NCBI RefSeq assembly: GCF_026571515.1
Contig: NW_026852806.1
Coordinates: 62,001-126,000 of the forward strand
Length of the DNA stretch: 64,000 nt
Direction of reading: 5' to 3'
Origin: Ruditapes philippinarum
Taxonomy: Eukaryota
Position numbers and translations under genes: made by a program. Below the pieces are notes generated by a model, which made no database searches, was not told the DNA's origin, and saw only the letters and a program-made list of their open reading frames with translations. The stretch's first letter is position 1. Each line of letters starts with the position of its first letter. Below, one piece after another: positions 14,132 to 56,053 of this stretch.

Positions 14132-16482
14132 GATAGAATTATCAACCAATGACTTTGTAATTGGACAATGTAATGACTTGAACACTCGGGGTGTTCTAAA
14201 CGGAAATCTATTGAATAAGGTACTCTCACGCTTAATTAAAGTAATGTATTAAAGGTGAGTCGTTCCTTTAAACTTGATATTGAAGCACGTGTCAATATAT
14301 ATTTCATAAACGTTCCTTTTTACGTTTTAGTATGACAAAGCCATCTAATATTTGTAAACTAACCCTTAACATTATGAATGTATGGTGAACAATAGATGTT
14401 TTAAAATTGCTTCACTAGTTTGTAAATATTTGATAAAACAAGACCGAGTAATAATGGCAGTAATGGACCACATATGATTCGGAAATTAAAAAAAAAAGTA
14501 GTCTGCATAATATAATAGATAACTTGAATCAATCATGAAAGCAACACTCGCGATCATTGCATAAATAAATATTAGATTTGTCACGCGTCCACAAAATTGC
14601 AAGGATGGCATAATTTCAAGCATGCCTAAACGGAATAATTTAATCGATTATGAATAGTTACGTGTGCTGTATTCATTCATTGTTTTATTTTATTTATTTT
14701 AAATATGCTGTACGTGATAACCATCTCTAGATACTTATGGCTAATTGTGATCGTAATCACACAAATGAATTTAGACATGGTATAAAAACGATCACTTGCC
14801 CTTATTTAGTTCAACTTCTTTGTGATTGTATTACTGCATATCTAAACTTAAATCGATCATTCATTATTGAACATTTATACACTTTTTAAACACGCATTAT
14901 CTATTTCCTAAATATAGAACCAACTGAATTACGACTTAAACGAATCTTTAGTTTAAAAGGCATCCGACTTAACCACTCGGAACACCGCTAGAATTAATTG
15001 ATACTAAGTTAATGTTGGAAATCTGAACATAACATGTATTTTGTGTTTTCATTCATTCAAATGTCTAAATATTTCTAGATTTCAAATATTATGTAAATTT
15101 CAAAATGTTTGCGCGAATATAATAATACAAGGCAGTTTGTAATGTACGTGTATTAGGACCAAACTTATTATCTTTGAATTTGGTAAAACCATTTCCGTTG
15201 TTTCTACGTATGCTACTATGCCCATCTATGTTGCTATCTCTACATCTTTAAAAAAACATCATAAAAATTACTTTCAAATGTTCCAAATTTAATATATATA
15301 AGTAAATAAGAGCAAGTCATACGTTTTAAGTTAAAAAAACAACAGTAAAGTGATATTCGATTTGGCTAAATTATCGCGATGATGTCAATTTGTCATATCT
15401 CGACCCATTACTTCATTAGCATTTTGTGAAAAATGGCTGTTTTCATTTCGAAGCCTCCTGTTACAAGTTCAAATTGCTATGATAACGTAAAAAGGATTCG
15501 ATACTGTTCAAACTTGAAACACATGTTGACTGTACTATAGCCTTTGTAACCGCATACCCAATATTAAATTTCCTGTTACCATGTCAACGAGGGAACATCT
15601 CAAAATTGCCGACAATAACTACTTTGCGTTGATTTTTTTCACCTTAACTGAAATCAAATTAATGCAACTTCTCAATGGATTGCGACAGAGTCAAATTCTT
15701 TACAGCGTTGGTTACACGTTACCTTAAGGTCGATCTGGGACCATTTTCAGCCTCTCACAAATCTAAATAATTCTTGGAAACAAGGGTCTGTCGACCCCCT
15801 TCAAACCCCTAAACAGAAAGGCGCACATCTGCCCCTGGCACCCCTTTGATGTATTTATTTGATTGGGGATGGCGCCGCAAATGTGATCGCTTTTTCCAAC
15901 ACCATTTATCAAACGAAAACAAGTGTTTGGGATCTAAACCGGGTAAAGCTGAATAGTCGCAAAATGACCTATTCTGTTTTGGTGTAACGCAAACAACCAA
16001 AACTAAAAACTATGTTCGAAACAATATAATACTTCCAGATACTTTCTAAGTAAGCATTTCTTAGAACAATTCTTAAATACCAGAGACAGAGACAGAGTGG
16101 ACATGGACAGATGATTAAGCTAGCTAATAAGAGAGTATTCTAGGTAAACTTAGAAACGATGTTGTTTTTATTTGGAAAACATATGGCACGCTTGTACTAT
16201 GAACGTCATTCAAATAACACATTTTAAAGTAAAAACTAACTACAATATATGCGATAACAGCGTTTGAAAGAATTTATCGACATGATAATGGCAGTTTTAA
16301 GTTATAATTAGAATATAAAACATCAAACTTTAAAGCGCTGCTTCATTAAGAATGTCATAAACACCGCAATGCAAGCGCACATGGATATTAGTATAGGTCT
16401 TTGAATTGCTTGACTGATTGATTTGTTAATTATCGACGTTCTTTGCGATCCTGTCGCTGACACTGGGATGTTAAGACGATGC

Positions 16483-20329: not shown

Positions 20330-21429
20330 TTACTTGTTTGCTGATGTCGGAGCGGTTTTCGCTGTTCTCTCTCGCTGCTTTTTCATGCTTAGTTCTGGTT
20401 TATTTATAAAGTGTTTGATTTTACTTATCATGTATGCTATAAGATCGTGATCCGGACCTGTGCGATTTTGTTGAACCACTTCGTCGATGCTTGCTCCAAG
20501 AATGGCGAGGAAAAGGGTAAGGAAAAAATAAACGACAATCAGAATGTATAACATGAAGAAAACTTTCGCCAGTACGGGGTTTGTTTCATTTATTTCTGTG
20601 AACCTACTCTTTCCAATCATTGCTATATATAATGTTCCCATACACTGGTATACGTTTCTGTACGATTCAAGCTGCGAACCAAAGAGAAGCAATGCCAATC
20701 CGCAAAACCCGACAAAAATCTGGACAAATGTTATGCCATACCAAAACAGATCTTTGCCACATTTTCTGAAGATATCCACGATTGCTTTCAAATGTTTAAG
20801 TGTAGACAGTACCTCGAGCATCCTTATTGTGGCTAGAAATGCTAACACACCTAGAGCCAGCACAAAACCTTGATCCCAAAACACAATATGACTAAAGTTC
20901 ACATAAAGTTTATTATCCTGTTTAAACTTCTTGATCGTTTCAAACGAGAATCGTAGCCGAAAACAAAATAAAATCATGGCTGTCGCTGCAACAAGAAAAA
21001 TGACAAGATCATATACAGTCCAAAATATTTTGAAGTACTCAGATCGTAGTCGGTAAAGTCGCAGACAAATTCGGATGAAGAAACATGTAATATAAAGCAC
21101 AAACAATATTTCACATACAAGTGTCCAAGTTCCTGCAGCCCCATGGTGTGGATAAACACGTAATGGGTATGTGTTATACGTTGTAAATGCACCACCTGTT
21201 TGGGGAAACTCTATCATAAACATATTGTCAACGAACAAGTTTGTAGACGCATCATAAAGTGTAAATTCTACGATCACAGCTCGAGTTTGGCGATCAATCC
21301 ATAGGTTTTTATACAGTTCGTTGATAGTGGCGATAGAATAATTGAGATTAACATGAAGTGATGCTATATAACCTCCGCCACCATATGTTGTATAGTATCC
21401 TGTCAAAGGTAACCCCCAGATACCTAAAG
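20330..21429 (-). CDS. Gene A exon 42, TOP end, TM7-11, pore and stop codon
   Basis: Includes the 358-aa ORF with [24 protein letters not shown] motifs. Confidence 0.95.
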
Positions 21430-24400
21430 CTAGAAAAGGAAATATGTTAAAGCTTGTGCACTATATACATGTTAGATCAATCAAAAATTTATAACCCTGT
21501 TCTTTTTATCTGAATTTGATAAATTACATTACATTATCTCTATCATTTTTAACAACATTCTGATTTTCTTTTTTAAAGATTTTTTTTATAAAAGATCTAA
21601 AGAGAAGTATATTTTTATTGATTGGTGTGATATTGCTGAAGTTGTTTATGATAATGGTTCTTTGAGACTAATAGATGACAGTTGTTTGTCTATTAGTTTC
21701 ATCACAGGCGCATATTTGACTTTCCATGATATTTTTTAAAAGAGATAGAATTTTTTTGCAGTTGTAACCGAGCATGTAGGATAGACGTTTCTCTACTTCT
21801 GACGTTACAGAAAGTTGGACATTATTTAAAAAATGAAAGAATAGATGCGTTATTGATGTTTAACGCTTATTAATTTCAAGCATAGGTTGTTGATGAAGAA
21901 CAAAATTGGAAAAAGGTTTAGAGTTACAGAAGACATGTTTGATATCATTGTGAACGTAGCCAGCCGTCATATTTTTCTAATGAGTCAAAGGTAAGGAAAA
22001 AAAACTGAAAAAACATTAATCAAAGATATGTATTTAACGTATTATGGTTATATGCCAACTGCATTGATGCACTTGTCTGTTGTGAACAAGTTGAAGATGT
22101 GTTTATGCAATATACGTTCAAGGACTTTGTTGGAGGCACTAAGTAGAGAGGTTACTGCCAAATAACTACTTATATATTGCGAACCGTTTTACTTATGAAT
22201 GGCATTATCCTGAGCAATTATGTTTGAACTGTGCGGGAACTTCCCCTGAATGTCAATAGTTGAATATATTGCAGAGAGGAGTAACAGATTCAACAAATAG
22301 TTGTTGCAAGACGAAATTGTTGACATGGTGTAAACTTGTAGCTTTACCGGAATTCTGGAGTATAAGGGCGTCTATTATTTCGGTTTCAGTGACTAAAAGG
22401 GAGTGCAAATGTGGACACCGTGGATCGAGGTGTTTGGATAAACTTTAGTCGTTTCATTCAGTTTGTGCTTGGAAGACATTTTTAGATACGTTTGCCTTGT
22501 ATATGTTTGTATATGTTTGTTTTAAATATCTGATTGTTATGTTGAGGTGTGTAAATTCCTAAGGTGTGATGTTTGATTTTATGAATTGTTGGATAACCGT
22601 TTGATATGTCTGGGCTCCTAATTGTTGTTGTTGTACTAATTTGTTTTACTGTGATTTATTGGCATTGCGTGCAAGTGTTGTGAATGAGTTGTTGCTTGTT
22701 TGAATAATGTCCAATTTTATTTTTATTTTGTTTGTTTAGCTGTATCATATGATTATTTTTGTTTGTTTTTATGTCTTACTTTGGAGCGACTAATCTGCAG
22801 TTATTTGTTTAGTCAAAAATTAATGGAAACTGCTAAGGACATTAGCCTTATTCTTACACGATTGGAATTTCCATGCTGAAGATGTCACATTATAGACAGC
22901 CTCTGTTAAGCTGCATGGGTAGTTTTTCCATCCAATACAGTAGTTTTCGTCATCTTCATTCCATATTTGATATCCACCAAAACAAGATGTCCGGTCGATG
23001 TAAGGTATGTCACAAGTAACTACAGGTAATCATATAATTGTAATAAAATAAAATAAGTAATTATATTGTAATGTAACCTTATAAAATGATCACATGAGAA
23101 AGATGATGTCAAAAGTAAACCTTATTTAAAATAAACGTAGATCAAGGCCTTTTCAATTCACAGGAATTACATATAACTAGTCCAAAATATGCAGGATCTT
23201 TTCTTTCTCCGTTACTTACAAAGTAGTGTTTCAGTGATAAGGTCATATTTTGCATGACGTTTCACATTGAGAATATTGAAAAAAAATCTTAAATTAAAAC
23301 ATATTTTTCCAAAAGTTTGATCTCTTCAAACTTATCTTAATCTTCCGTATATATGTCAATTTAAAGTAGACATAACAAAATCGTTAATCAATCTCTTTGT
23401 ATTCTAATTTTTTATCAGAACTGTTTGGAAGTTTTTCTTTTTTTAAACTCCGAATCATCTCAATTTATACCTTTTAAGAATGCAGATGTATACAAAGAAT
23501 CATGAATTCTAGATACCTTGTTTAGTTCGCAGCTGTCGTAGTCTTGGCGGCCCAAGTCTTAGATGATGATCATATGTGAATTGTCGCTCTGTCCAGTGTA
23601 AGACCATACCGTACTCGTCATGTTCACGGAATAAGTAAGGAATCATTGTGTCATTTATCCACTTAAACAAATCATTTGGTGACTTTATCTTAAAAGTAAT
23701 GAAAATAGAAGACGTATTAAATTTATCGATTTTGCTAAGAAGAATAGAATGGCATCATGTATTTGTGGTTAATTTGTGACTTGAATGTTTACGTGTAATT
23801 TCTGACCTAAGTTTCATTTTATATTAGGTTCCCAAAACATTTGATCAAAACATAGTCACACTAAATATTAGATATCTATATCATGGGCATTTTCAAACGT
23901 TTAATTCATAGCATTTCACATATATATCTTTACGTAAAAAGTGATTATAATACTTTAACAGATTTTACGTAATTCCTAAATAATAAAATTTAATGTACAC
24001 TTCGTTTATGTGAAACGGGTGCAATATGGTAAGTGATCAATTCGAAATTCGTTGATTAACATATTAAAACATAATTATATTAACAATTTTGATATCTACT
24101 TAAGAGAGGGTTAGTTAAAATTGTGAGGGAAAAAACTCCCAAATTAATTTAAATAAGTAAATAATGCGTCTTCTTTAATTTGATTTAGAGTATGCAAAAG
24201 AATTAGTACATAATCTAATTGAAATATACCGAGTTAAACTGTTGGGTATGACGTGGTGTTACAAGTCTATTGCCAAGATGCGTGTGATGTAGAAACGACC
24301 TGACATCTCTGTTGGAATAGCAGATTACTGACACAATGATAATAAAAACAAGGTTTAATTTAATGTCCTTCAAACTTCTATGAAAGTTTATGTATTGCCG

Positions 24401-27400: not shown

Positions 27401-30400
27401 ACCGGCGATAGCTTAGCTTCTAGACATGTTTCAATAGACAGCCAGGTCTCGAAAGGAAAAGAATATCTACAAAGACACATTTTATCAATCAAAACTGAAA
27501 ATAATGTTACAACTTCGTTAACGGAGAAACATAAAGCAAAATATATAGCAAAACGTAGCATTAGTATTGATTGCTTAATGCAAAACTTAGACTAAGAAGA
27601 GAACGACTCTGAGTTTGAAACTATGTAAACGTATTATATCATAATATAGCACAAGAAACGATATTTCTAAATCGGTATTCTCATTCCGTGTATTGGAATT
27701 TGATCCTATTTATCAATAAAAGTCTAATTTTATAAATGTGAAGAAGCAGATGCTTAACTAACGTGTTTTGTCGTTGCAAATCATACACATCAACTTGATT
27801 AAGGTACCATGATGCAAAATTGCCATTTCCACTATTGTCATGCCATATATGAAGACTCTGCAAATCACCAAGATCCTTATACGTCGACATTATAAATGAC
27901 ATTACACTGCCAGTGCTAAACTCCTAGAAGGATTTAAAGGAAAATAGGTATAAGTATTAACTCAACTCAATATGCAAGAATGAGTTGAAACGCAATTGAA
28001 AAAAACATGTTTCAGTATCAGCACAAACGCAATTTATTTGCCAGCAAAGTGGGGTGATGACTTTATTTGGTGATATTTTAAAAGTTCATTTTTTCACTGC
28101 AAATTTCTTTACAATGAATGAATAATTACGATTTGTATTGGAATTTGTATTGGAATTTTTTACAATGCTGATATCATTGACAAAGACATATTTCTTGATA
28201 TACACATAAATTAGAAACTGTAGTTTATAGAAAGATAAATTGTCAGACTTACCTCTCTTATACCATCAAATAATTCTCGATTACCGGATATGTCATATTC
28301 ACCGCTCAAATGAAAAGCAACACGAGACCTTGTACCATCTCCTCTACGCATGCCCGTAAAAACTCTTATTACATAAAAGTTTTGATCAGTGATGTAATTG
28401 TCGCGAAGTGGTGTTATAACCCACTGGAACCAAAAATATATAATAAAAAGGCGGTGAACTTTTTGGGGATAATAGAATGTACTGTTATCTTTCATCTTTG
28501 CATTTAAAATTGTATTCATTGCTTTTATATTTTGTTTCTTTGTCACTGGATTTTGTTTTTTTTTATTTAAGAATGTTTTAGACTTCTTGTGATAATACAT
28601 TATATTAAAAAATAATGTTATGTGACATCAGAATTTTACCCTCTGGTGTAAAATATGATGTTAGGCATAATAATATTTCTCATCGTCTTTTGTTTGGAAC
28701 AAAAGTATTTAAACAGTTTATATGCGGATGTTACTTTTCAAACATCATAACAATGTCAAATTCATGGTAATATAGTTTTATAAAATTACGAAAATTATCT
28801 AAACAAAGGATCATTTAATTTACAGACCTTTAATTTATCTTTTCTGTCAAGTCGAGCAAGAAAAATCACTGAAATTATGTAGATGGTGAAGAGTCCAGCA
28901 AGGGTACCGAGAACAGCAGCTTGGTTTAATGGGGAGAACTTTAGAAAAACGGTTGAAAAATCAATAGCATTTGGAGCAACAAAGAATGAATTTCCAAAAA
29001 CCATATCGGCCAATCCTTGACAAAGACAAACAATTTTGACATCTTCCCGCAACCAATCAATAAGCTTGAATAAAAAAGGATATAAAATAAAGCAAATAAG
29101 ACAAGAATAAGACGATCAATTTCTATCTAATGAATAAAATGTGGTAAGTTTTCATCAATCATCAACAAATCTTTTGGGAATTTAGTGATGAGAATTTAAT
29201 GTAATGATAAGTTATGAGGAACCTGAATCATCCGAGATTTGTGCTTAAAAGTTTTCTTTGTACTGTTTTGTTGGTTTCGCTGGTTTTTATATTACCCAAA
29301 TAATTAACCTTATAGGTATTTACAAAGATGACGTGAAACATTGTTTCCATTATCATTTGGATCATTAGCTTTCAAAACAAATAACTGTTGTGCAATTATG
29401 ATATTTTTCGTACCTGGCACTTCTTTGCATTCCATTGTGATTTTTCCTCTTCCCATGTAAGGCATCCCATTGTTGCTATCGTTATGTTATAATCAAATGT
29501 TTTGTCTGAAAAGAAAAGTAATGAATAATTATATTTAACCTCCCACACAAAACGGGTTTAAAAATTCATCATTTGTTATTACTTTTGCAAAGAAGACAAA
29601 TTTACAGTTTCTTTGAGATAACTGTGACCTAACAGTTATGTTTCACTTGACACAGATATAAATAGCCCTATTATCACACCCGTTAACAGCAGCGAGTAGG
29701 ACAGCTTGATGCAGGCAGAACTTACTACATAAATGTCAATTTTATATCGGAATAAAACTTTTTTTGATATACGTGTTCTTCAATTTCACAAGTAATAATT
29801 TATATATATACCGGAAATCATGGCGAATACAAACAGTCATATGTGTATCTTATAAAAAAATTTCACGGTTATAATGAGAATGTACAATTAGTTCTACAAT
29901 GAAATCACATGTCAGTACCTTCTTCTGGTTCTGAAATGTTCCTTTGTAAGCTCCCTGTGTCAGTTTTGGATACACCTGTAATTATTAAAATAAATGGCAT
30001 ATGAATGCATAGTTCAATGTTTGCAATATATTTAATGTCTTGTTTCACTCTACTTAACATGCCTTTTGTATTTCATCCATTTTTATGACATTTTTTTACA
30101 AATGTTTTACTCTACCATTCATATAGAAACGACCACTTGTCATAGGAAATACTCTATCTCCATTTTTTATGCTAATCAATACTTACAAAAGTTATGCTCA
30201 GTGATCTTTTGACATTTGTCACTCAAACAATGATCATCATTCGTTTACATATATTTTCAAACCTACTTACATCAGAAATGCTTACTCATATACGGAGGCT
30301 GATTCCAAAAATAATCATTAAGCAAGTGTCTCTTAATATAATGAACATGCTACTCACTAATTCCTTGAAAACTTATTGCCAAATAGGTAACTCCAGTGTG

Positions 30401-37700: not shown

Positions 37701-40700
37701 CTGTTGGTTAGAACAATCATTAATCTTTCCAACATGTACTTTCACGTGCATATCATGGTACCACTGATTAAAATTTGCCCCTCTATGAAAAACACAATAA
37801 CAAAACGCATTCAAATGATAATGGTCTAACTTTTCTTATTATTAACTCATCAGTTTTGAAAGAACATTGACGGGATAAATCGCTCATAATCGTCTTGTAG
37901 TTCAATACTCGGTCCGGGCTTGAGTAAAGTAAAGAAAATAAAGTTTCAGCTATGTGAATTGGTCCTTGACCTACATTTATCATCTACAGGGCATGTGTGA
38001 AGATTCAGAAAATACTTGCTATAGTTGTAGGGACGGAAATAGTATTGACTCAAAGAACTGGTTCACATACAGATTTAGCGCGATTCAGAGACTGTTAATT
38101 TTGTTACGATTTTAACAGCCATTCTGGGATTTTTCATTTTACAGTATCCTATTTGTTCTGTTATTTTTTTCTATTTTCTTGTATATGATTTGTAAACAAA
38201 ATTCTAAGTAGTTAGTATCATATGTTGAATTTTGTATGGTCCTGACTTGAATAAAATATGTCCACAAATAACTAATTTATACCGAAAAGTGTGCCAGGTT
38301 ATAAGTTCCTCTGGGTGTATATTAAACTATTTATAAAAAAACGTGACGTGATACATTAGGATGTCTAACCAAGTTTTGCGTCTAGCTTTCTAAACGAATT
38401 GGTAGTATAATGCAGGATAGAATATAAGGGTAATTTACCTCAATATCTATATTTTATAGCAACACATCAGTATTTTCTTTTGGCGTGAATTGACCTTACG
38501 AAATGACATTACTTCAATTCACGATCAGGGCTGAGAGACTGGTCCTTTGAGGTATAGATTATGAAAATTATTCCGTTTTTGCACACAATCATAACGTTAT
38601 AACAGTGATTACCCCGCTGTGTTATGCGTTCCTTTTCATTATAAGCACCATCTGTTACTTGTAGGACTGTATAAGTAAGTGAAGGGGTTTTATTTATGAT
38701 GTTATTTGTTGTCAACCTTCTACTCCGGGTGCTCCATGACTTACATCGTAATTGTACCAAGTCGAATGCAGACTCCACTATGTAGAAAAAAACAACACTT
38801 TTTTAAGAGTATTTTTAGTAACTTGACTTTATTTTCTATTATCAGCTTTTTGTGTTAACCCTTTGATGATATAAATATATAATTTCCAAACTTTTCAACG
38901 GATGTAAACAATTTATAACAGTTCTGAAACAATAAACTAAAAGTAGCATTGCCATAGCCCCATAAGGCACATTGTCTCACCTGTAGCTATACTGCACACT
39001 GCACATTTCCTTACTAATGTTTATTCAACTATGAAGTTTCGTGATGATATCTCCTATAGTCTTAAAGCTATTTTACAGACTTATTTAAAAAAACAGGCAA
39101 AAGAAAGTTACGTTGTTAGGTATGGTTCCTTTCATGAATAACAATTATGACGTTTGATAATGAAAATACCTCCTTTGAATTTGAGTATTTCTCCTGAGTA
39201 ATAATAGGTCGGCATTAAACGCTATAAGGTAAGATTATTCCAGAATGTATGTTTGTTGGGTCGGAGGGGATATGATGATTAGCGTCAATTTATTCAATTG
39301 TGAAATCCTTAGAACTACACTTCAATGAATGAGCATTATATCATGTTGTTTCATCAGCGAAAATCAACAGGAACTAAAACTTACCATTAGATTTATCAAT
39401 TACGCACGTGCCTCCATGCGGAACATAATCAAAGGTTCTTTTAACAGCAACAGTATTGCTCAACCTCCGATCAGCTGAAGTGACCTTGACCTCGAAAATG
39501 TAAGTATTACCCTCTAATATTTTATCTTTGTGTATTGTCATTGACTGTTCGCCTACAACATAGAGAGAAAAATGTCATACAATGCCAAATACAATGTAAT
39601 CTAAAGCATGCTATAACACAGTGCTACCATGTCTACAGCGATACCTCTGAAATTTAATCGAACTGAGTCTGCAACATGTTCAGTTCTTAGTATTTTGCTA
39701 TGTTAACCATGTAGAACTCCTGCTCAATTCAATCTGCTAACACCAATTGGCAGAAATAATATCGTGAATGTTTTACCTTTAATTATTATGTGCGTATAAG
39801 CAATTTCATTATTCGCAAGAATCTCGGAGAAGAGGCTTTTAAGTGTTTACCTGTTTTATCAATCACTCCCTCAAGCCAGGCAAAAGTGTCATTTATCCAG
39901 GTATAAACATTCCATTGATACTTGAAAAATGTCCAATTAGCGGTCATATTGACCTGTGTATCGAGTGTCAGCATGTCAAAATTGATGAAGCCACCGTGCG
40001 TTGCATTGCAGTTGTATACGCAGCTAAAGAAAAAAACAAAAGTAAAAAGGTAAACATTGCAATTGTAGGTAATGAAGACAACATTACAATCGAAGTTATA
40101 GAATGTACTTCTAACCCCGCGCTCGAACGTACACAACTCATTATTCTTCAAAAATATTACAAAATCACATGAATACACTTGCGAAAAGGAACTACATCAA
40201 TAGAGGCCGATTTAAACTCTACCAAACTTCAAAAAAGTAATAGGTCGCAAAACATATATGATAGTATTTTGAACATCATCAGTTCCACCCAGTTATCTTG
40301 AAAAACCGCAAGAATGTGAATAGAACACGTGCATTTTGCAAAAGTATCGCAGAATTATGCAAATGAATAATGAATGCCATGACGGACATGTGTGAATAGG
40401 TACTATCATGGTTAGCGGACGGTTTACACATAGGGCTGTTGGAACTTTCTTTTTAATGCTCATATTTCCTGCAAAGTCTTTGCTTCTCAAGATCGTTTGT
40501 GAGAATGAAGACCTGGGTATAGCATTGAATACGACTACTTTTCGTCGATAAAGATAATTTTCAAAACTTTTCCTTATCGGTTTACTAGAAATATGACATG
40601 TGCCGAAGAGAATAAGTATGTAATATTATACTGAATTGAAGAATCAAAATGTTATTCAGGCATTTTTTATCAGGTACGTAACCAGATTAATCTCAATTCA

Positions 40701-43700
40701 TTTAGGCAATTTAATTTATTTCTAATAGTGAGAACAATGACAATATCGCTGATTTTTAAGATGACTCTTCATGTGCAATCTTATAATGGTAAGTTCCAGC
40801 TAGAAAAGTTAGGTAAGCCTCGTAAATCTTATCAAGCATTAGTTTATATGAAGTATCTCCTGAAAGAGTATTTTGATTAAAACATTTGCCCGACATTTGA
40901 ATCAATAACAAAGGTTCTTGGAGCAGTACCATATCTTAATTATGTTTTGTAATAATTATCTTACCTTATTGATGCAGGTAGTATATTTTCAACAAACTTT
41001 AAGACTTGAAAGGCTGTTGAAATTCGGCTTCCTTTTGACATCGTAAATACAGCAACACCATAGGAATTGATTGGAAAATATTGTGTAAATATCTCCAGAA
41101 CGTTCACGTTTCCGATTTGAATTTCGTATCTTTTACCTACACTCGATCTTTGGTTGTTTATAAGACTATAAACTGCATCATCAGATGTTTCTGATGAAAT
41201 AAGTTCAAAAGTCCAACTTGTTACTAACTTTGACTCATCAGCATAATTTAAGACACCAACCGTATCACATGAATCGGAAGCATTCACATAAACAATTTCC
41301 CCGTGCGACACGTATAAAAAGTCACCGCCTGGTATAAATGTGTATATTTCTGGCAAGGTAACCTCCATCACAATAAAATCATTGAACCACGATCCATCTA
41401 AAACTACTTCTAGAATGACAACATAAATCCCTGGTCTTAGTGTGCCACTAGGTAGTACTAAGTTTCTCGATTTTGGTTGAATGAAGTCCGTAAATGGCAT
41501 AAGTGTATTTCCAGAGACTTGAACAAACCGCCAATGATACTCGGCACCTACACATGTTCTGTTGATATCATCATAGCTATTGATCTGAAATGACGAAAAA
41601 ACATCAGATTAATAATCATTGAAAAAGAATAAGCTGGGAATTAAATATGTCAAATGACTAAATTAAGAACAATCTGGAGCTTCGGTTACTTCTGCTTGAC
41701 CTTTGCGTGAGACGTTTTACTGAAAACATTAAATTATTGATATAATTAAATATCTGAAAGAAGATTATGTAACCTCACACATAAATGGAAACTAGTTCCA
41801 CATAAAAATGTCATTGATAGTCAAAAAGGCATATAAAAGGAAGAAAAGTTATATACTTCAACTGTTTTGTCAGCTAAAACACGTTTTGGTTTTGTAAAAT
41901 CGTTGTACAAGTCATCCAAGAAATTGTCTGAATCCATGCAGCATTTCTTTTCTGGACAACGAGTGATTGTTCCGTACCCGTCTTTACATTCGGTCTGAAT
42001 TTCATATACCCCATACTTAAAATAATATAAAAGTTGATGTCATTGTAATATAAACAATTCACTTACATACATGTTAATAATTAATATTTGTTAAAATTAT
42101 TTCAGAACAGAAAATCAACTTTTTCAGGGAGTTTTGAATAAATATAAACATGTTTGTATGCGTTGAATAAAAGAAATGGTTTGTTTTTGTATACTAAGCT
42201 AGATACACGCAATTGTTAATTTTATAAAAAAATAAAATAAAAGTTAGACACTTATTGGCCTATATGTGACCTACGCTTACAATGTTATAATACAAAATTA
42301 TCTTAAAACATGACTGAAAAAAATAGATGAACAGATGTATCAATACTCAAATTGTGATTCATAATCTGTCCTTAATTGTCAAATTTCCTAACTGAAAGTC
42401 GTACTAAAATACCGTTGTAATGTAAGGAAGTCAAAAAGTTATTTTAGCAGAAACAGAGCATGGTAAAGCTTTATACTCCTGTCACTAACATGTAGCACTC
42501 GTTGAGTAAAAAGTAACTTACATTTAAATACGTGTGGTTCAGTTGTTCAACTTCATACGAAACGTTCAAGTTGGTTTTGCTTCCATCACCCCAAAGTATT
42601 GAGCAGGATAAAGTTTGTGAATTACAGTTAGTTACTAGCATGTCTACGGTCACAGATACACTTTGGGGTGTGTCCAAACTTTTTATATCAACTGCATGTA
42701 CATACTTTGTGCAAGCATATCCTTAAACAATAAGAAAACTACTTGCAAATGATATGTAAACTGTAAACAAGAAAGTTATACCAACAAAAGCGAGTGGTGT
42801 GATCAGCTAATTTTACGTAATATGTAAATTTTTTCAAAATTATTTGACAGGTTTCAATACAGTGCATAGACAATTATTATGATATAAATATAATCTTGGA
42901 CAAACATTAAAAATAATTAAAATGTTTGCCACATTGTGCAATGGAAATTGAGGTTCGAAAGGTACTTTACATAAAATGGTGTCGTAACATTAGAACTTCA
43001 CTATTTATTAAAATCAAGTTTTATGTATCAAGGTAGTGTAAATTAGCAAGCATTTACACAATAAATTTGGTCAATAGCGTTTTGTATATGTATGATAAGA
43101 TATTAAACAACTACTGTGTCATACGTCTTTGTTTTGGGCTTTTTTAAGCCGATTCACTACAGTTAATGTGTAATGATTCATTTGAAATACTGCAATCTTA
43201 TTGCGCCGCTCTTTACCAATTTAGTTTTGTAAATACATTCTTATGAACACTAACCTAAAATGGATATGTTCTTAATAAATGTGAATAATAATTTAAATTT
43301 TACTTACTTGAGTTGATTATAGAAAAAGTTACTATATCAAATTCACTTGTCCCAAGAATTACAAGACTTTCAGCATTATTGACATCTACAATTTCAACAT
43401 TATTTATTGAATCTTAAACCAAAGCATAGAAAAGTTTCGATCTAAAACGAAAAATGATATCTTTTGAAATATTTGTTATCAAGTTATGCTGGTATGTTAA
43501 TAGCTCTTTCCAAGCAGAAGAGAGTATGAATCGTTTAAAAATATCATGAACACTGTTTATTGTATATACATTATTGATACCGACAAGTAAAGACGTACAA
43601 TCAAAATTCTTAGTGTATGGCGTAGTGTGAAAATCAGTTTTAGCGAACTGTGTAACAATTTCATTAGCATTTAATTTTAAGGAGTATATTTTTTTAAACT

Positions 43701-46700
43701 TAGATGAATTATGCTTTATATAAAGTTTTGTTTCAAATATGTTAATTAAATGAATATATTTACCTATATGTGGTTGATATAGAAGTTAGCATGTCTGAAA
43801 CGAGTCCCATTCCGAGGAATGGGACGGAGGCTAACCTTAAATGTTTCCTCTGTGAAATTCCACAGATGATATGGTTTTATTTTTGTTGTTTTTATTGTTT
43901 TCTAGGGGCGGTTAAATATAAAGAAGTGTTTTAAGCAGGGGGGCAGTAATCCTGACATAAAATGTAAGATCAAACCTTTCTGAACTTTTTTTCTTTCAGC
44001 TTTACCATATTTTTGAAATGTCTGACCATTTTTAGTTTTGATAGTGATATGATTTAAACATTTTTTTATGTAAATATTATTGAATGGAAATCTCGTAATA
44101 AAATAATCTCGCTACAATCTGCAACGTTGTTGTTTGTTTTTTACCAGTTGTTATTTCATTTAATATCTTGATAAGGAATCTATGCATTACGTATTTTCGC
44201 TCCGCAAGTCTCCAGGCGAAAATACAATAACATGATAAAAATCAGCCAGTGTAGCAACAAATAGCTTACTTGTCAAGTACATGCATCAATAAAACACGAA
44301 TTAGTTATTCTCGTGATGACAGTTACTTTACTATTATAATAACAAATTATATCTAGCGAAGTAATAATTAAATATTCATTTAATTCAAGTTCGTTGAAAC
44401 ATATTGCATCGTAAATGAAAATAATTTTATAGATATTGCTACTAATGTGTTTCTATATTGATTAGAGGATCTGGTATTTATTACATATTTATAAATGAAA
44501 TAGTGAGAATGATTAATGGAATAAAATGCGTACTTTCATTTTCATCACAGTAAAAAATATTTAATTTTTTACTTCAGTGAAACATATTTTCATCATCAGA
44601 AATACTTCAGAAACATGCCCCACATCTTTAAAAAAAAACACATTTTTTATTAAATATCGAGTATCGTATGTTTATAATCATTACGAATGATATTTTCACT
44701 TATATGATTTGATAACAGAATCGAGAAAAAATGGAATCCTTAAAGAATGCCCAAACCGACATTATTGAAAATGTTGCAGACTCGATTTAATATTGCCTAT
44801 TTATGAACGGTAGTGGTAAAACATTGTCACATGTATATCATTTGTTTATCCTATTTACCTGTCTCAGTCAAATCAAACCTTTCATCAGTAGATCTGTGTT
44901 CCCTTTCATGTTTACTTGAACCTTAAACGAAAGGAATCGGAACAGGGATTTAAAAAATCATTTATACTTCGGAAGATCCTTGTAGATATTTTTAAAATAT
45001 TTACAAAAGATGCAGCCATGAAAAAAGCAAAATAAAAAGCTGATATAAAACTAATACCTAAAAGATTGAAATAAAGTTAGACGAAGATAACATAATGACA
45101 GATCTAAACTGAAACACATAGTATTTTAGGAATGACTCAAGAAATGGCAGCCATAATACGTGCTATGTGAAAAAGTATTTTCAGGGGATTGTTTAATTTC
45201 ATTGATTTTGGTTATGCTCAAATCATCTACAAATGTACAGTAAGACCTAGCATTGCCAGCGGTAGACGTTTTGAGAAAAATGAATTACAAGAAATGAAAT
45301 ACTTTTCTTTTTAAGAGACTATTTACCTTCTATAGCAAGAACTTTGAAGGGTCTTTCTCCTGTAAATAAAGGAAATAGGTCAAGTATATTATTGTTTAAA
45401 TATAAAAAATAAACAATTATAAAAGCAATTAGTTATTTGAAAATAATCAAGCAAAATGTAATTGAACTTTCTTCAAAGACATGATGAACTGCTTTGTTTT
45501 TACTTGTGGAATTTTAAAATTACAAATACATCGTAAATTTGTATAATGAATAAAAAAAATCTAAACGAAGCAGTTACACAACTTATCGCGGGTCATGTAT
45601 TTTATCATTACAATTATTAAGATAGTAGGACACATTATTTAAGTTTATAAATGACTCATTAATTGTTCATTTTATTATCAAGAATTCAAGACAGAAATTA
45701 ACTTTGCTAATAAATGACTTTTAAAACGCATTACCTAAACTACAGTTCTTGCCAGTCCATCCTGGCTTGCAAACACAAGTATAATCGTTTATTTTATCAA
45801 TACACTGAACAGAATTCATGCACTGTCCAATACAGTCGTTTATATCTGAATAAATAAAACATGTAAACATTGTATAGGCAATAAACAGTAAAATAAAATT
45901 TTGTTAGAGGTTTCCAATGTGCAGTGTTAGAGAGACGATGTTTGAGGACTTGGACATTAACATTTACATAAACACTACCTTCCATAATTAATCTAGTACA
46001 TAAATCTGAACTGATAAATGCGCTGTTAACTGTCTTGAAAGGGTTGATGCACGAAAGATCTTTTGAAATAAGGTTCAATCAAACCGAAACGATTATTTGT
46101 TTGCTTTGGGTGTGCATAGTACTTCATATAACCAAAACCTTTGAAAGTCGGATGTAATCATATAAAGCGTCTGTGTTAGTGAACATTGTCTGTATGGTGA
46201 GCAACCAAAAATAATAATGGCGTCCCTAGCGAGCGTAAACGGTAGAATTCTAAACAATACATTTTTAAGAAAAACATGTAATATTTCTGCCTTGTCAAAT
46301 AATGCATACGATACTACAGCACATTAAGAATGAAATGTATGGTTGCACTCTCAAAGAATTCATGGGACTGTAACAGACCTTTGAATTCGTTTGTTATAGT
46401 CTTGGATGGGCGATTTGTTTCACTGTGATAATTTGGTTTACAAAGGTTTGTCACAGGCCAGCATTAAACTGCCCAGCTATTGAAAATGATTTATGCGGAG
46501 AACATTTACTTGTATACAAACGGATACGAGCAAAAATCAAATCCGATTACAATTGAAAACCTGCCATAGTGTGACTGAAACATTGCATAAACATGGGGTT
46601 TAACTTTACAAAGTAAGAAAATTTAAAAAAAATTACTTTTATGACAATAGTAACCATTCCAGCCGTCTTTGCATGAACACTTAAAAGACTGGGGACGATT

Positions 46701-49700
46701 GGTACATTCTCCACCATGTTTACACGGGCTACTGGCACAGTAATCTTTTTCTGCAAAAAAGAATTGAAGCCATAAAATACCCAGATTTTTGAAACCTGGG
46801 AATTTTATTGTGTATCACGAAGATTCAATCAGTATATATACTAATGTAACGGTCGTAGTATTCTTCCGGAAATTATTTGTGTTTTCGTTGAATTCGACTG
46901 GACATTAATGAAATAAACAAGTTTTACTTTTTTCATCTTTGGTAGTGGGTAGACAGCAGGACGAATTTTGTCTAATTTTTAAAGGGGTATCAAAACGTTT
47001 TAAGACTTCAGTCATACGACCATATCATAATGGAATATCGAGAAGAATATTGCATCACCGGCTTCATCTATCTTTATGAGACTAGTACGAGGGGTATTCC
47101 AAAATTAATGTTACTTGGGTTCTTTCTCGTGGAATTCGTGCAATGTCCATCAAAATAATAAGAACAATAATGTAAAGAAATGACTATGTAAAAGGCATAA
47201 ACATTGAACAATTATTCTTATAAAATAGACATACTTGTTTAAAATCGTTCCTACCTCGTTAGAACGGTTGTTAAAATATACTCTATATTTTCTCTCTTAC
47301 AGCACTGAGCGTGATGTTTGAGGACTTAATCTTTGGTCTTCATTTCGTTCATTAAAATGTTTTTTTTTAGAATAAAGCTAAAATCTATGCATTGTAAATG
47401 GAAAATCATAGAGGATATTTGTTTGTTTGTGTGTAAGATGAAATTTTATTTCTTCGATTGAGCTTTAAAAACAGTATTCTCACGAGTAGCGTCGCCACGA
47501 GTGAGAATACTGTTTTTAAAGTTCACGAGTACAATATGGGGAAAATCTAAAAAAGTAGTTTCGTCATTGAAAAGTGTGAAATTATATTTTGATAATTTTC
47601 ACGGAAAAATCAGTAATCCACTGAGAAGCATAAAATAAATACCTATATTCCATACTTTGGTTATAAAAGTTTGGTTAAAATGAGGTAAATTTATAGTTTC
47701 AGTCTGGCACTGAGTGTCACATTCAGTTGTTTCCTTGCACAGGGTTGAACATTCAGGATATTTGGCAGGATACCAGATCCCGACACCGTCTTGAGTGTAG
47801 CCAGAAACCATACCACCAAAATGGCAAGGCGCTTGCATTACCATGTGTTCATACCATTGTAAGGTACCAGTAACTGTTGTCCGTAAGTCCGTATTCTGTG
47901 TGTCATATGATTGCACCTTCAATATAAATTAAAGATGTAGTTAAGTCTATCTTTCCCTTGGAAGTATTTGGCATACTTGTCGTGGTACTCTATCTTTTAG
48001 CGCATATCGCTTTCAACAGACTAAGCTGCAAACCAAAACTTGTCAAAATTGATGCTTACAAATTAGTGTCATATACGACATGTTACAATTTGAACCAGAA
48101 TTGTTCGAGCTTTTGTAAATCCATTTACCAATAGAAATAAATTTATCAATTAACTATGAAATATTGAATATTTTATTTCTCTTTTTTGTTCCGTCTGGCA
48201 TAAACATAATAAAATATTATCTTTTAAAAGTAAAGTATGGCCGAATCAGTAACAAAAAAGTAGGATAAAATGGACATAAAATGTTCAGAAGAAGAACTGA
48301 CATGACATGAATTTAAAATGATCAACAACATAATATATGATACTTGCAAATTGTTAATAGGACAAAGATTGATATAGAGAAGACATATACATTATACAGT
48401 TTAAAACAGCTTCATTGCCCTAAGGGCTCAATACAAGTGAAAGTGACCTGTTAATACACATGCATGCTTATTTAAGTAATTTATCTTCAACTTATCAATT
48501 TTTATTTCAAATGGTTTAAATTACTTACGAACGTTCTAACTAAGACACTGTCCAAGTCACTAGTTATAAATGGAACGTGATGATCTGGTTGCAATGCTCG
48601 GCTTTTTGTTTCGTCAGATTGTACCAAGATATCAACCAAATTAACTGAATTGCCATGATCATTGATGATATCAGAAATCAGCATGTTTCTGTCAAAATAT
48701 GTCCATACTTTATTTCCAGCCATTTCTAATTCGTGAAGTGTAACTGAACTGTGCAGAACGTCTTTCAAATACATCGATGAGTTCAATAAATCTCCTAGAT
48801 AGACATTTGTACCTATCAGATCTAGAATTTGAACGTCCAAGTCAGTACCGTCCTCAATGATGATATTAGCAAATGTAATTGTATCACCCAACAATATTTC
48901 AACTTTAGTTTTAAGCATATAACAAAGAGAGGAGGACTCTGCAAAGGTTTTGTTAAACTCAACTAAATCTGGAAAGACAGATTTGGTTGATGCCAAGTCA
49001 AACATCTGTTCCAGCATTCCATTAATATCAGAAAAACACTTAAATGTTTCATTCATCAAGTTGCTGACAGTAAAAGTTTCATTAACTATTTTTCTCAAAG
49101 TTTTATTGTCAATGTCTAAGTTTGCAGCCGATTCTCTCATTTGAGGAAACATATTTTGAATTGTATCTAGCTTGTTGGCTATGTCCTCAAGATATTCCAG
49201 TAGTTGAGTTGTTTCATTAAATTGATTGCCGTCGTTAAGAAAAATAATTTTCAAGTTGTGTCCGCTTTCAATTAATTCGTAAACAGAGTTATCAAATTTG
49301 TTTACACTGTCATTAACCGATCTACTCGATTTATATATTTCACGCAATGAGAAAAATATTGAATCATCATTAAAAATATTGTCCAGCTCCATTGACTCGT
49401 CAAATAGTGCAAAATATTCAGATGATTCTTTAACAGAAACGGTTTTATTTATAACTGTGTCAATTTTGATAGAATTATCTATAAATTCATTTAAGAAAAT
49501 TGTATCATTTAACGGAATTTCAGCTTTTAAAGTGGTATTAAGCACTTGAGCGATAGGCAAGTTATTATCAACGCCGTATCCTGTAGACAAACTTGTATCT
49601 AGTAAATTACCAAGAGTCACTGTTCCATCCAAAACAATTCTGATTGATTCTGACATTTCAATAAGCTGTTTAAGGGTAATACTGTCTTCAGATTTGATTA

Positions 49701-52700
49701 TGTCATTAATGTGGGTTGTATTTATAAATTCACCTACTGTCAATGATTCGTTTAAAAATCGACCAAGTGTCATTTCCTTGTGAATCAAATCACTTACAGG
49801 GATTGACTTGTTAATCACAACATCAAAAGCTTGAACAGTGCCATTCAATAATTCAATGAACTTTGTCTGATCATCCATTTTCATTCCTGGTACCGTTGAT
49901 ATTTTTATAGAATCATAATTGAAGAAACTTTTGTCCGTATATGCTTGCAAATCTGTAGAATTCCAGATAAACACCTCTAACAAACCGTCTGTGATAATTG
50001 TCTCTTCACTGTCTGTCCCATCACCAGCAACTAAAACTTCTAAAATGATTGAAAATTGTCATCAGAGCATGGCTTTCTCTTTTGTGTTTGACGTTATAAA
50101 AAGACCTACTAACGCTGTTTATAATCACAAATGAGTATTTGAAAGCAAGACGATTCTTCTTGGGGAAAAAAACCCAACAAAAGTATAGAATATAAATAGT
50201 TTCGAACTGTTATCCGTGCCTCAATTTAGAACAAACTAAGATATCTTACAAACACGATTATAAACAAAATTGGCACAAATAAACAAGTTCTTGCAAAGAT
50301 TCGAGAATAATGGCTTTAATGACGTAGGAATTACACTTGGCTTGTGTGAGTAAGTATAATAAGGTAAAATTAATCAAGGTGTGTGACAAACCAGGTGCTT
50401 TGCTAACATATACATTTTGCTTATCATATTCATAGGCAACATAACCAGTTTTCTCGGGTGAGTCGGCAAGCAACTGAATCGGAGAACCTGAAAAATATAT
50501 TATATCCGGGTTTTTTTTTCAACATTGATATAATTAAGTATTTTTATACAGTATGTATTTAGCATAACATAGCATACCATAGCTGCCTAAAATAGTTTGG
50601 TTTTGACAACGCAAATGCCAAAGTCTTACTTGCTTCTAATCAAAGTAGTAATAGGTCGAAAGAAATCACCTATTCCTTTTTTCACAGCAGCATAAAAACT
50701 AGTAAGTCAATGGTACTAAATGAATGTTATATGCAAAGTGGTATATTATGTTTAATAAACGCTGCAAGGATGCTTTCTGTTCGTTCCACGAACGCTGCAA
50801 ACAACCTACTACATACGCACATGAATGTTTTACAATATATGACCGCTACAAACATAAGGTCATAACTTATCAGAAACCTTACATGTTTAGCATATTATAT
50901 CTCTGTTTTACGTAATAAGAACGCTAAAATCATATGGCGTCAATATTAAGTAGGTTTTTATTAGATGAATATTACAACAAATGACAAACCTATAACGCTG
51001 TTTTTTATGAAAGCTAAAACCAATGCCATCAACATAGTGTTTACTATAAAGTTTTAACCGGCATTTTCTTGCGTTTAAAGGTTACAAATTGCATGATTTT
51101 ATTCGAATTTAATATATTTCATCATGCGGTGAAAACTATTTATGAGCATATTTCAACTGTCTTCAAAAGTTTTGTCACAAATTAAGCATGAGAATATAAC
51201 CTTCTAGTGAAAAAGGCCGTCCTGAAAAAGAAGACTGTAACTATCTATTAGGTTGTTATTTGATTGGCTTGTATTTTATAAATTCATATGATATGTTTGC
51301 TACATACCTATTGAATCTGAGTAACCATTCCGAAAAAAATTACAAATAGAGTTAATATATCTTGTCCTTGATATCACGAGATCGGGATACACTCCAAAAC
51401 CATGCTCGAATTCGATTGTTCTTTGCCCGTTACCCATAGTTGAAGTCTTTGTAACAGATGGTTGAGGCAAACTAGATGACTTCCAAGCCCGAACTCGGAT
51501 TTTCGTCATCAAGCCATCCGGCAACTCAGCTGTAATAAAAGGATTAAAGTCTGTTTTAAGGAAACGGCAGTATGTTATCCAAAAGGTAGTAAGCTTTTAA
51601 GAACTTTAATTTTATGATGAAAATATGACAAAAGACTTATTTTCTTAAATGTGATACTAAGACAAGTTACCCGTGAATTTGCATCTTCCGTAGTCCCTGT
51701 TTTTATTTCTAGCCATCGCTATAACCTTGACAACACGTTCGTTATAAATGTACATTACTCCGTTTTCACTATCTGGTTCGTATTTTCGACATTTACTTTC
51801 CCAACACTCAGATTTACTAATCTTGGACTCTGGTGCTCTTAAATCTCTATTTTGAATTATGTGTCCTAAAACATAAAATATGTACTAGACAGCATTGGTA
51901 CTTTATACCCATTGAAATAGGACATAAGTAAAGTAATTTTAAGATCATGTTCAAATATCTTTATTTATTCAGTTTGGTTTTAATTCCATTGGTTCTTTCA
52001 AGTTCAAACCGTTTCCTAAGTACAGTAACGGGTTAACTCCTATTATAAATCAATACGAGTTAACCCGTTACTGCAAAGTGACATTATGGCGGATTTCAAT
52101 CCTTTACGCTGGTGGAAAACCTCAAGTGCCAAACTATGCAAGCGGGTATCTAACTTGAACCGACTTCTGTAAGCCGGATAGCTTTATGAAAGCAGTCAAT
52201 GTCCCTTGTGGAATTCCTACCCATATATAAGGGAGACAATTCGTTGTACAAATGTATTTGACTTGTACAAATATAATATATTTGAAGCAAGGAGTTGAAT
52301 CTTATGCTATTGAAAAGTGTTTTGATATTTATTATTTAAACCAATATAATTAAATGTCAGACAACAAAATGGTAATAAAAATTAATCATGAGTGTCAAGT
52401 TATTGCCACGTTAGTAAAACAGTATACCGACGCCAAATGTTAGTCGTAATTATCAAAATATAATCCAACGACTTGCACATAATACACGTTTGATGTTTAA
52501 GTATACAATTAAGTCTCACAATGCCTAAAGTTACTTATACCCTTTGCCAGATTTTTCCTTAGATAATGTGGAATATATCAATGAAGCGAATTTCTTAAAA
52601 TAAAAAAGGAATAGGCTATCCACCTAGACACGTTAACTATCCATTAATATTTTAAAAGCTATTCTTATCGTACCTGATGCTTGGTAAATGGTGCCGTAAT

Positions 52701-54863
52701 CATTATCTTTGACCTGGACATCAACCAATAAAGGAGTTTCCTGAAGTCCATGCACCACGATCTTTACAGATTCTGTAGTATTCAACCCGGTCCACAGATC
52801 TATCCAACCTGAGTTGAAGTCCGGGGATTTCAACGTGCCACCTTTTGCAATGATAAAAATTTATGACCACTGAGCTATTGCCATGTTTATAAGACGGACA
52901 ACAACTCCATCTCATGTGTCGGGACAAAGGAAAATACAGGACAAGGGTTATCTTTGCACTTTCGTACTTTTTAATTTTCGCCCCGCCAAAACTGAGTTAC
53001 ATGTAAAGGTTAAGTACGAACGTGAAATGTGAAGAACTAACGTAATGTGTAAAGACGACAAATAATGACTTATAAATCTTCCTGTGTAGCCCTGCATGAA
53101 CTGTTCGTAACATGTTCGTAACATGTACATGTATCAAAGAAGATGGGGGTAAATAGTATACATATAGGAAAATGTACAGAACAGAAAATAATAATTGAAA
53201 CACAAAACTAAAAAACTTCACAACCTTTAAAAGATAGCTTCTTGCTAATGATTAAGAACGAATTGAATAAAATTATATTGCTGCCGTCATATCCAATGAA
53301 ACTTTCATGAAATGACGTTGAAGTCAAAATGACGTCGTGACCAGCGCGGCTTCCACTGTATAGTTCCAAATGTTTATTTTGTATCTCATAAAATGCATGA
53401 AATGGTTCATGTGGGAATTACGTACATTACTTTGAAATAGATATTTTTTTTTAAAGTGTGACGATTTGTTTTTATTTCAAACAATTATTATTCCAACTTT
53501 AGTAGGGACAAACCTCGTATAATTACAATTTGGAATTTACTCTTGTAAATGAAATAGAAAACGGTGTAAAACCCTATTTAAAATACAACAAACTCACTCA
53601 CTATCCCTCATGATCGGTTAAGATTTACGATAAATAATATTCTATTATTTATATAATGAAACATTTTATGGGTTACCAAAAAGCAAAAAGGGGAAATGTC
53701 TTACATGTCACGTGAAATAAACCAAAAAGTAGCAAACGCCTCAGCAATATCCTGAAATGGAAAATACCAAAAAAGCATATTATTTCCTACCTATCTCGTG
53801 TACTTAACCGTAATCTTTGTCTGTGTTAAAATAATTTCATTACACTACAAAACAAAAGAAAAAAATAATACTTTAACATGTTTGACACATGGCCAAGTGA
53901 AAGTGACTGTCATGACATGAAAAATTATCGTTCATCAATGCTAACCAAATACGAATGACTGCTAGATTTGAAAAAAATAATCTTATGACTCGCAATTATC
54001 GTCCAATTTAAACGTACGTTTAATTGTTTTTATTTAAGAATAAAATTATCATAAATAAGATCTCTAAAGTTTTGTGTTGCTTTTTAAATTAAGGGATTAA
54101 AGAAGATCAACTTCGATCTTGAATAAATACACGCTAGACATTAAGGAAAATACTAAGTGGCGGCGTGCCCGAGTGGTTAGGGCGTCGGACTACATGTAGT
54201 AATGTGAGGATTGATGGCCGCATGGGTTCAAACCCTGTCAGTCAAGAAACTTTACACTCATTTCAAGTACTGGTTGGTTCCAGGAACGGATTCGAGAGTG
54301 TTTCAGTATGATTATAGCTTCCAACACAATCGAAATGGGGGGGGGGGCTTAAGGGGATTAATGTTCATTAAAGAGATGGAAAAAAGAAGGAAAATACTTC
54401 ATAAAATCAATAGAAATTGAAACTTTAATAACATCAGATAAAATGTTTTTATTACATCATTCGAAATTTCAAAAACATCAGACGAAATTTCAGTAACATT
54501 AATCGATATTTTAGAAACATCGGCAGAAATGTTAGTAATATCAGCCGAAATTTTGGTTATATCCATTGAAATCTTAGTAACATTAACCGAAATTTAAATA
54601 TAAAAGAAAAACGAAATTGTTGTTATATCAAACGGAATCAGAGGAAAGTTTATTTGCATCAGTGGAAACATTAGTTGCATCAATGACATAAGTCGAAATT
54701 TTAGTTACATTCAAATAAAACTTGAGTAGCATTAATTTGAATTTCAGTAATATAAGTCGAAATCGTTATAAAAATGTTAACATTTACAAAAAAATTGTTA
54801 AAATGTAGTTATTTATTTACAGCCCATGCTCATATTGGCGAAAAATAGAAAAGATTATTTTAA

Positions 54864-55846: not shown

Positions 55847-56053
55847 NNNNNNNNNNNNNNNNNNNNNNNNNNNNNNNNNNNNNNNNNNNNNNNNNNNNNN
55901 NNNNNNNNNNNNNNNNNNNNNNNNNNNNNNNNNNNNNNNNNNNNNNNNNNNNNNNNNNNNNNNNNNNNNNNNNNNNNNNNNNNNNNNNNNNNNNNNNNNN
56001 NNNNNNNNNNNNNNNNNNNNNNNNNNNNNNNNNNNNNNNNNNNNNNNNNNNNN
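55847..56053. other. Assembly gap after a T-rich tract
   Basis: Run of N. Confidence 1.

Follow-up and report, generated by a model that had tools for sequence, protein, structure and literature searches.

A candidate three-module head, related to a bacterial trimerisation domain, at the N-terminus of a polycystin-1-like receptor gene of the clam Ruditapes philippinarum

Introduction

What polycystin-1-type receptors sense, and how their far N-terminus acts on the channel, is largely open. Here we consider a 64-kb stretch of the genome of the clam Ruditapes philippinarum (contig NW_026852806.1, positions 62,001 to 126,000 of the forward strand; the whole stretch is called the window below). 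Its minus strand bears the exons of a polycystin-1-like (REJ-family) receptor, preceded by 5′ exons that encode three copies of a small beta-rich module. We asked what this tip is, whether it belongs to the receptor, and what it might do there. Our best explanation of the whole, to which we give a probability of roughly 55%, is that the tip is the N-terminal pseudo-trimer head of the receptor, for recognition or activation. The clam gene would then be a natural variant in which a compact three-module head replaces the usual lectin-type tip. Other tip domains described in the PKD1 family are LRR, WSC and SUEL. The described PKD1/REJ members bear C-type lectin domains and PKD repeats (PMC1934368).

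Results and Discussion

Seven 5′ exons encode a signal peptide and three module copies

All coordinates are positions within the window, all tip exons lie on the minus strand, and all searches of the window were made exon by exon. A profile of the module, ~118 positions long and made from database proteins only, was run on the window's complete set of 1,982 open frames, both strands included. It found exons A, B, C, D and F in module order, and apart from exon A of a tandem paralogue no other frame of the window scored better than an expectation value (E) of 0.78. The profile was made from unrelated proteins, and its matches follow the order of the module along the exons; the three copies after the signal peptide, which had been claimed from the letters alone, are therefore real. 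As read from the sequence, the seven 5′ exons code for a signal peptide followed by the ~118-residue module in three degenerate copies.

The signal-peptide exon (53705–53751) encodes a hydrophobic leader ending in FHVT, the Met of which is presumably completed by an exon further upstream. Its donor T/GTAAG (the slash marks the exon boundary) is in phase 1, and the phases fit at the junction with exon A, with a Cys codon across the junction. Exon A (52674–52841) holds the first half of copy 1 with the motif PDFNSGW (profile positions 1–52, E 2e-10), and exon B (51671–51865) holds its middle, including GVMYIYN (positions 59–95, E 2e-4), with a Cys-containing insertion and a degenerate form of the family motif DDD...YGG. 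Exon C (51308–51529) completes copy 1 (IRVRAW, up to 51483) and, after a linker, opens copy 2 (from ~51428); it matched positions 111–117 for copy 1 and then 14–39 for copy 2 (E 5e-3), and its phase-1 donor ATAG/GTATGT stands at the same module position as the donor of exon A. Exon D (50392–50487) encodes the middle of copy 2 (GYVAYEYD); it has the phases of exon B and a weak profile match (positions 46–78, E 0.19). Exon E (48529–50039) runs from the end of copy 2 (to 49963, ending LLEVFIW) through a long insert to the start of copy 3 (at ~48549, SVLVRTF) and has the phase-0 donor TTC/GTAAGT. The remainder of copy 3 is in exon F (47643–47916; positions 35–83, E 1e-3), with the phase-1 donor ATAG/GTATTT. 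AG/GT sites and compatible phases are present at every one of these junctions.

Copy 1 is made up of exons A and B and the start of C, and copy 2 of the remainder of C, exon D and the start of E. Because this three-exon layout is identical in both, and the phase-1 introns are at equivalent module positions, copies 1 and 2 appear to represent a duplicated unit. Copy 3 is without about the first 27 module positions, which is true of all bivalve triplets. Two details of the original prediction need correcting here, although the copies themselves stand: the letters VLVRTFVQ, given there as the HGL...P motif of copy 3, are the strand that follows this motif, and copy 2 is without the PDF.SGW start. 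The insert of exon E (48590–49960) places ~450 residues rich in Leu, Ile, Asp, Asn and Ser between copies 2 and 3. It has a periodicity of 10 residues (the autocorrelation of hydrophobicity is 0.32 at a lag of 10 and 0.19 at a lag of 20) and holds 14 of the 15 N-x-S/T sites of exon E; its identity is 60–65% in both paralogues of the gene and 42% in an open reading frame (ORF) of an ENA contig (P0161).

The tip exons are probably spliced to the receptor body

The conserved splice sites make it likely that the tip exons are spliced to the EGF-REJ-channel body and are part of one gene. The phase-1 donor of exon F at 47643 and the phase-1 acceptor of the first EGF exon at 46750 (gcag/AAAAAGAT, in frame with exon F) are 887 nt apart, and the splice between them was deduced from the conservation of donor, acceptor and phase in three paralogues. 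In these paralogues the exon F donor is kept in position and phase, and the EGF acceptor is kept as well, while the tails obtained by reading through the donor are unrelated; because the tails are unrelated and the donor is conserved, the sequence beyond the donor is intron-like. This intron is 0.5–2.3 kb long in the three paralogues, and the first EGF exon has neither a start codon nor a leader of its own.

Moreover, the exon order A to F, EGF, EGF, REJ and onwards is common to all three paralogues, with the exons open. One of them is the tandem downstream paralogue, whose exon-A equivalent lies at 620–826 on the minus strand (71% identity, profile E 4e-8) and the remainder of which extends beyond the start of the window; the third, on contig C2249 (26001–66000), has the same order of tip and body exons as the window gene. 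Identity among the paralogues is 87–96% in the exons nearest the membrane and 57–75% in the tip. The ratio of nonsynonymous to synonymous divergence (dN/dS) was 0.34–0.38 for the tip and 0.28–0.31 for the body, so that both are under purifying selection in the three paralogues; dS was similar, suggesting that tip and body were duplicated as one unit.

The body itself was largely recovered by Pfam on single minus-strand exons. Two EGF exons (46637–46750, E 5.7e-8; open frame 45724–45903, E 1e-7) are followed by a REJ-domain exon (open frame 40964–41608, PF02010, E 9.7e-11) with a further REJ piece at 39377–39574 (E 0.03), a PLAT/LH2 exon (open frame 27684–27923, PF01477, E 1e-5) and a last large exon (20333–21460) with the polycystin (TOP) domain and the PKD-channel transmembrane region (PKD_channel PF08016, E 7.9e-32; Polycystin_dom PF20519, E 8.8e-20; Ion_trans, E 9.9e-15). 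The REJ domain by which the PKD1/REJ family is defined (PMC1934368) was thus found together with PLAT/LH2 and the C-terminal polycystin and channel block. Of the downstream domains named earlier, the PKD repeat and the GPS had no Pfam match on single exons, including 42474–42722 for the PKD repeat. In the juxtamembrane frame 29115–28798 (minus strand) a Cys-x-Cys stretch resembling the GPS/stalk of polycystin-1 was seen by eye, with Gly-Leu-Ala in place of the His-Leu-Thr/Ser cleavage triplet; because of this replacement, the receptor may not self-cleave. Compared with human PKD1 and PKD1L1-3 and sea urchin SpREJ1-10, the clam gene shares the REJ, PLAT, polycystin/TOP and PKD-channel regions, an ectodomain of phase-1 exons and a recognition-type module at the far end; it differs in that the tip is a three-module head of pseudaminidase type (see below) with a 10-residue-repeat insert, and in that the cleavage triplet is not seen.

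The module family: one copy per chain in bacteria, three in animals

Equivalents of exon A are present as at least 18 paralogous exons in the clam genome (1.41 Gb), one of which is identical to the N-terminus of the Ruditapes philippinarum protein XP_060567802.1. With a profile of 15 of these paralogues, 210 cluster representatives were found at E ≤ 1e-3 among 1.84 billion. Their named sources include bivalves (Ruditapes, Mya, Argopecten, Mizuhopecten, Mactra, Mytilus), the brachiopod Lingula, the hemichordates Ptychodera and Glandiceps, the sponge Oscarella and Ca. Kentron bacteria, and nearly all members have no informative name, being called ‘uncharacterized’ or ‘hypothetical’ or named for another domain. 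No Pfam family covers the module in the tip exons, five members, 47 three-module proteins and eight bacterial members, and newer precomputed Pfam tables gave nothing on P0001 or P0168. Hence the view that the tip is none of LRR, WSC, C-type lectin or SUEL, and has no Pfam family, held. Literature searches on the module motifs returned nothing relevant. The module is a widespread extracellular domain family that is unnamed in Pfam and has a clear structural relative, and it merits a family entry and a structure.

In animals the module is usually at the end of the protein and is combined with, among others, Sushi, EGF, VWD/D8C, pentraxin, LamG, ILEI, fibrinogen, cadherin/TIG, WSC, PAN, VWA, TSP1 and collagen domains. 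The number of tandem modules is exactly three in 51 of the 65 matched proteins of at least 350 aa, and another protein bears two such triplets. In a quick tree, whose deep branches are unresolved, copies 1, 2 and 3 fell into clades by position, both in bivalves and in hemichordates, and these two groups come together in the clade of copy 1. In bacterial members a single module closes the protein at its very C-terminus and is preceded by collagen repeats, a MAM domain or repeats resembling those of tail fibres. This gives a simple and testable rule of architecture: one copy per chain in bacteria and three in animals. The suggestion of a phage tail-fibre-like module was thus right in spirit, since the module sits at the C-terminal end of collagen- and fibre-like proteins in bacteria; PHROGs matched the fibre-like N-termini of these proteins but not the module, and NCBIfam matches were to a Bdellovibrio fibre N-terminus only, below threshold. 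These N-termini are weakly like the mosaic adhesive trimer fibres of Bdellovibrio. The modules of the Ca. Kentron proteins, from metagenome-assembled genomes (MAGs), are ~45–50% identical to some eukaryotic copies (P0001; estimated by eye) and share with the animal modules a place at the distal end, here of a trimer-forming protein, but there is one C-terminal copy per chain and three chains make the trimer.

Several members with other layouts were noted. The symbiont proteins P0142 and P0164 (Ca. Kentron MAGs) show a mix of domains that is animal-like for a bacterium: a MAM domain, a collagen triple helix, repeats of fibre-like type and a single module at the end. The environmental proteins P0001 (JGI metagenome contig, 904 aa) and P0003 (ENA, 2278 aa) bear either two triplets of modules or three that are nearly identical; these modules are much nearer the bacterial consensus than the animal copies are; in P0001 they are joined by Pro/Thr-rich linkers. 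No evidence of the module was found in vertebrate VWDE, and a word-limited search with the triple of a Ptychodera VWDE-like protein returned only itself, P0001 and one Mytilus protein.

Fold of the module and assembly of three copies

Fold comparisons were made on relatives of the window modules, namely a bacterial member and the clam paralogue XP_060567802.1. The model of a bacterial single module matched residues 332–438 of 3h6j, the pseudaminidase of Pseudomonas aeruginosa, with Z 10.6 (root-mean-square deviation 3.0, 99 aligned residues, 24% identity), the next structural match being at Z 5.9, and Foldseek gave E 3.5e-5 for the same domain. Module 2 of the clam paralogue matched this fold with Z 5.7. 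At the sequence level, family profiles matched the 3h6j chain with E 0.005–0.02, with the motif PDFeSdWf...HGL..P..V.V aligned. The trimerisation domain at the C-terminus of P. aeruginosa pseudaminidase is thus a solved homologue of the clam module, and ‘uncharacterised’, which holds for Pfam, needs qualifying for structure.

The relative is the C-terminal domain of PA2794 (PDB 2w38/3h6j, residues ~330–438), which shares with the family the beta-sandwich fold and the opening motifs PDFxSxW...HGLxxxPxxVxV, and which was taken over as an independent trimerising unit in HEX17, an engineered hexavalent protein (PMC13098229). In the enzyme a single copy per chain holds the trimer together, whereas the clam has three diverged copies at a receptor N-terminus, which have partly lost the conserved motifs, and copy 3 is without the first strands. 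When three copies of a bacterial module (P0127, residues 64–187) were given to structure prediction, the homotrimer scored 0.93 against 0.00 for the best of three controls, the contacts agreed in at least 77% between runs, and the predicted local distance difference test score (pLDDT) of the partners was at least 87. The mark for this score was reached by 21 of 30 proteins solved as one-chain pairs and by none of 23 solved as single chains, and it is only rough for three copies. The prediction supports binding without demonstrating it, and the high score may reflect the already solved trimer of pseudaminidase. The most conserved motifs of the family are covered by the predicted interface between modules.

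For the animal arrangement, the AlphaFold2 model of the three-module clam paralogue XP_060567802.1 reached pLDDT 89.8 and a predicted template modelling score of 0.88, and in this model the three modules are one compact body. Because the fold relative trimerises, and because the three-module paralogue is modelled as one compact body, the tip of the clam receptor probably forms a pseudo-trimer head from a single chain. When all three modules were searched as one model, the single-chain TNF-family trimer 4zch (241 residues, Z 4.4) and the C1q trimer 5kca (Z 4.6) were matched, and Foldseek found nothing in the PDB at E ≤ 1e-3 and one weak phage match in BFVD. The likeness to TNF-family and C1q trimers, three beta-sandwiches on a pseudo-threefold axis with 217–241 residues aligned, is one of analogy only: the sequences are unrelated, and membership of either family was rejected because Z was only about 4.5.

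A recognition head on a polycystin-1-like receptor

Taken together, we propose that the seven 5′ exons would supply the N-terminus of a polycystin-1-like receptor whose gene extends, on the minus strand, from ~53751 to 20333. In bacteria one module per chain would make a homotrimer; in animals three position-specialised copies in one chain would pack together into a single-chain pseudo-trimer head, and in the clam gene the glycosylated 10-residue-repeat domain would loop out between copies 2 and 3. The head would occupy the distal end of the ectodomain, the place of lectin-type modules in other members of the PKD1 family, and would act as a ligand-recognition or channel-activating element, with its engagement relayed via EGF, REJ and the juxtamembrane region to the 11-transmembrane (TM), PLAT and channel body. 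There is a precedent for such an action, because a distal N-terminal fragment of PC-1 is an agonist of the polycystin complex (PMC7728438).

Several observations weigh against this proposal. The fold matches of the whole model to trimers are weak (Z about 4.5), much of the conserved interface motifs (DDD, YGG, DGWGG) is lost in the clam tip modules, and the ~450-residue insert separates copies 2 and 3 of what should be a pseudo-trimer. The sole experimentally known role of the solved relative is oligomerisation and not ligand binding. As to the union of tip and body, no database protein combining the two was found by protein and profile searches, no splice-junction reads were above threshold in four raw RNA runs, and in these runs the depth on the EGF exon was 0, as it was on exon D and on nearly all of exon B. 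(Seven other candidate RNA sets had word shares near the expectation for low-pass DNA.)

If the tip is joined to the receptor, it might be only a structural cap or folding nucleus derived from a trimerisation domain, the sensing being done by EGF, REJ and other parts of the ectodomain. We consider this unlikely. It accords with the trimerisation role of the one solved relative, with the position of the most conserved family motifs at the predicted interface between modules rather than on an exposed face, and with the dN/dS of the tip, which is barely above that of the body and gives no sign of diversifying selection. Nevertheless, the module is the distal tip of bacterial fibre-like proteins, which is the usual site of receptor-binding heads, and its partners in animals include many domains of adhesion and recognition, with the module usually at the protein end. 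Moreover, if it served purely as a spacer, there would be no need to retain three copies, each specialised for its position, as one unit in animals from bivalves to hemichordates.

Alternatively, the tip exons could be a separate gene for a secreted three-module protein, with the polycystin-1-like gene starting at or before the EGF exons. Stand-alone proteins made of a signal peptide and three modules are indeed common in this clam and other bivalves (P0007, P0006, P0012). Those of Ruditapes (XP_060567802.1) and Argopecten (XP_069112835.1), secreted or anchored and called ‘uncharacterized’, share with the receptor tip a signal peptide directly ahead of the copy 1-2-3 cassette, the intron positions and the linker motif that follows copy 1; they differ in that the protein ends with the cassette itself or with a Ser/Thr stalk and a single TM segment, and in having neither the EGF-REJ-channel body nor the 10-residue-repeat insert. 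Reading past the exon F donor gives a stop after 16 mostly hydrophobic residues, RNA depth was 1–3 on exon E against 0 on the EGF exon, and no database model joins tip and body. However, the position and phase of the donor are conserved in three paralogues whose tails are as unrelated as an intron would be, the EGF exon has a conserved in-frame phase-1 acceptor with no start codon or leader, the intron is merely 0.5–2.3 kb in the three copies, and the equal dS of tip and body indicates duplication as one unit. A separate gene is therefore quite improbable.

The RNA runs help little in this choice. Depth on the tip exons was 1–3, in run X19 only plus a patch in X21, with exons E and C covered; because exon D was at 0 and exon B almost at 0 too, the zero on the EGF exon says little, and the reads are too sparse to confirm or refute the splice. 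Protein searches with exons E and F returned no annotated clam protein, their only matches being four proteins of unspliced ORF type from short JGI/ENA contigs (P0159–P0161, P0169), and are for this reason uninformative on gene structure. The intron between exon F and the first EGF exon also holds, at 47408–47640, a short interspersed repeat with a small inverted repeat, on which RNA reads reached a depth of ~120 per strand direction in one run. Since 95–98% of these reads continue into unrelated sequence, they stem from copies of the repeat elsewhere in the genome.

A reading of the modules as divergent domains of H-type lectins, towards which the original prediction had leaned, and of the receptor as a sensor of GalNAc-type glycans is highly improbable: H-type lectins are likewise trimer-forming beta-sandwiches, and there were weak fold matches to Helix pomatia agglutinin (2ccv, Z 4.3–4.5) and discoidin I (2w94, Z 4.6) and, in an ESM Atlas features search, phage clusters with some H_lectin members (0.80–0.81), but PF09458 was unmatched on any exon, on the 47 three-module proteins and on the other family members scanned, bacterial ones included, Z values of 4.3–4.6 are within the background of unrelated beta-sandwiches and far below the 10.6 of the pseudaminidase domain, and the Atlas scores are under the 0.9 threshold of the tool. 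All phage clusters of that search (0.80–0.87) were below this threshold and serve as a lead only.

Returning to the proposed receptor head, its history can be sketched only tentatively, and we would not put the following at even odds. A bacterial homotrimeric fibre-tip or trimerisation domain might have been taken up early in animals and fixed as a three-in-one-chain recognition head, from sponges to hemichordates, on scaffolds of Sushi, VWD/D8C, cadherin, pentraxin and collagen, and might then have been shuffled in venerid clams onto a polycystin-1-like receptor, where three paralogous heads would tune ligand specificity, for example for gametes or microbes. Because the three paralogues bear diverged heads on similar bodies, they offer a ready-made swap experiment.

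Other features of the window

Between the two tandem polycystin-like paralogues, remnants of retroelements lie at 13324–14235 and 7287–7967 on the minus strand (RNase H, E 7.8e-14; reverse transcriptase, E 6.9e-20). Runs of N at 9999–10162 and 55847–56053 are assembly gaps or masked stretches.

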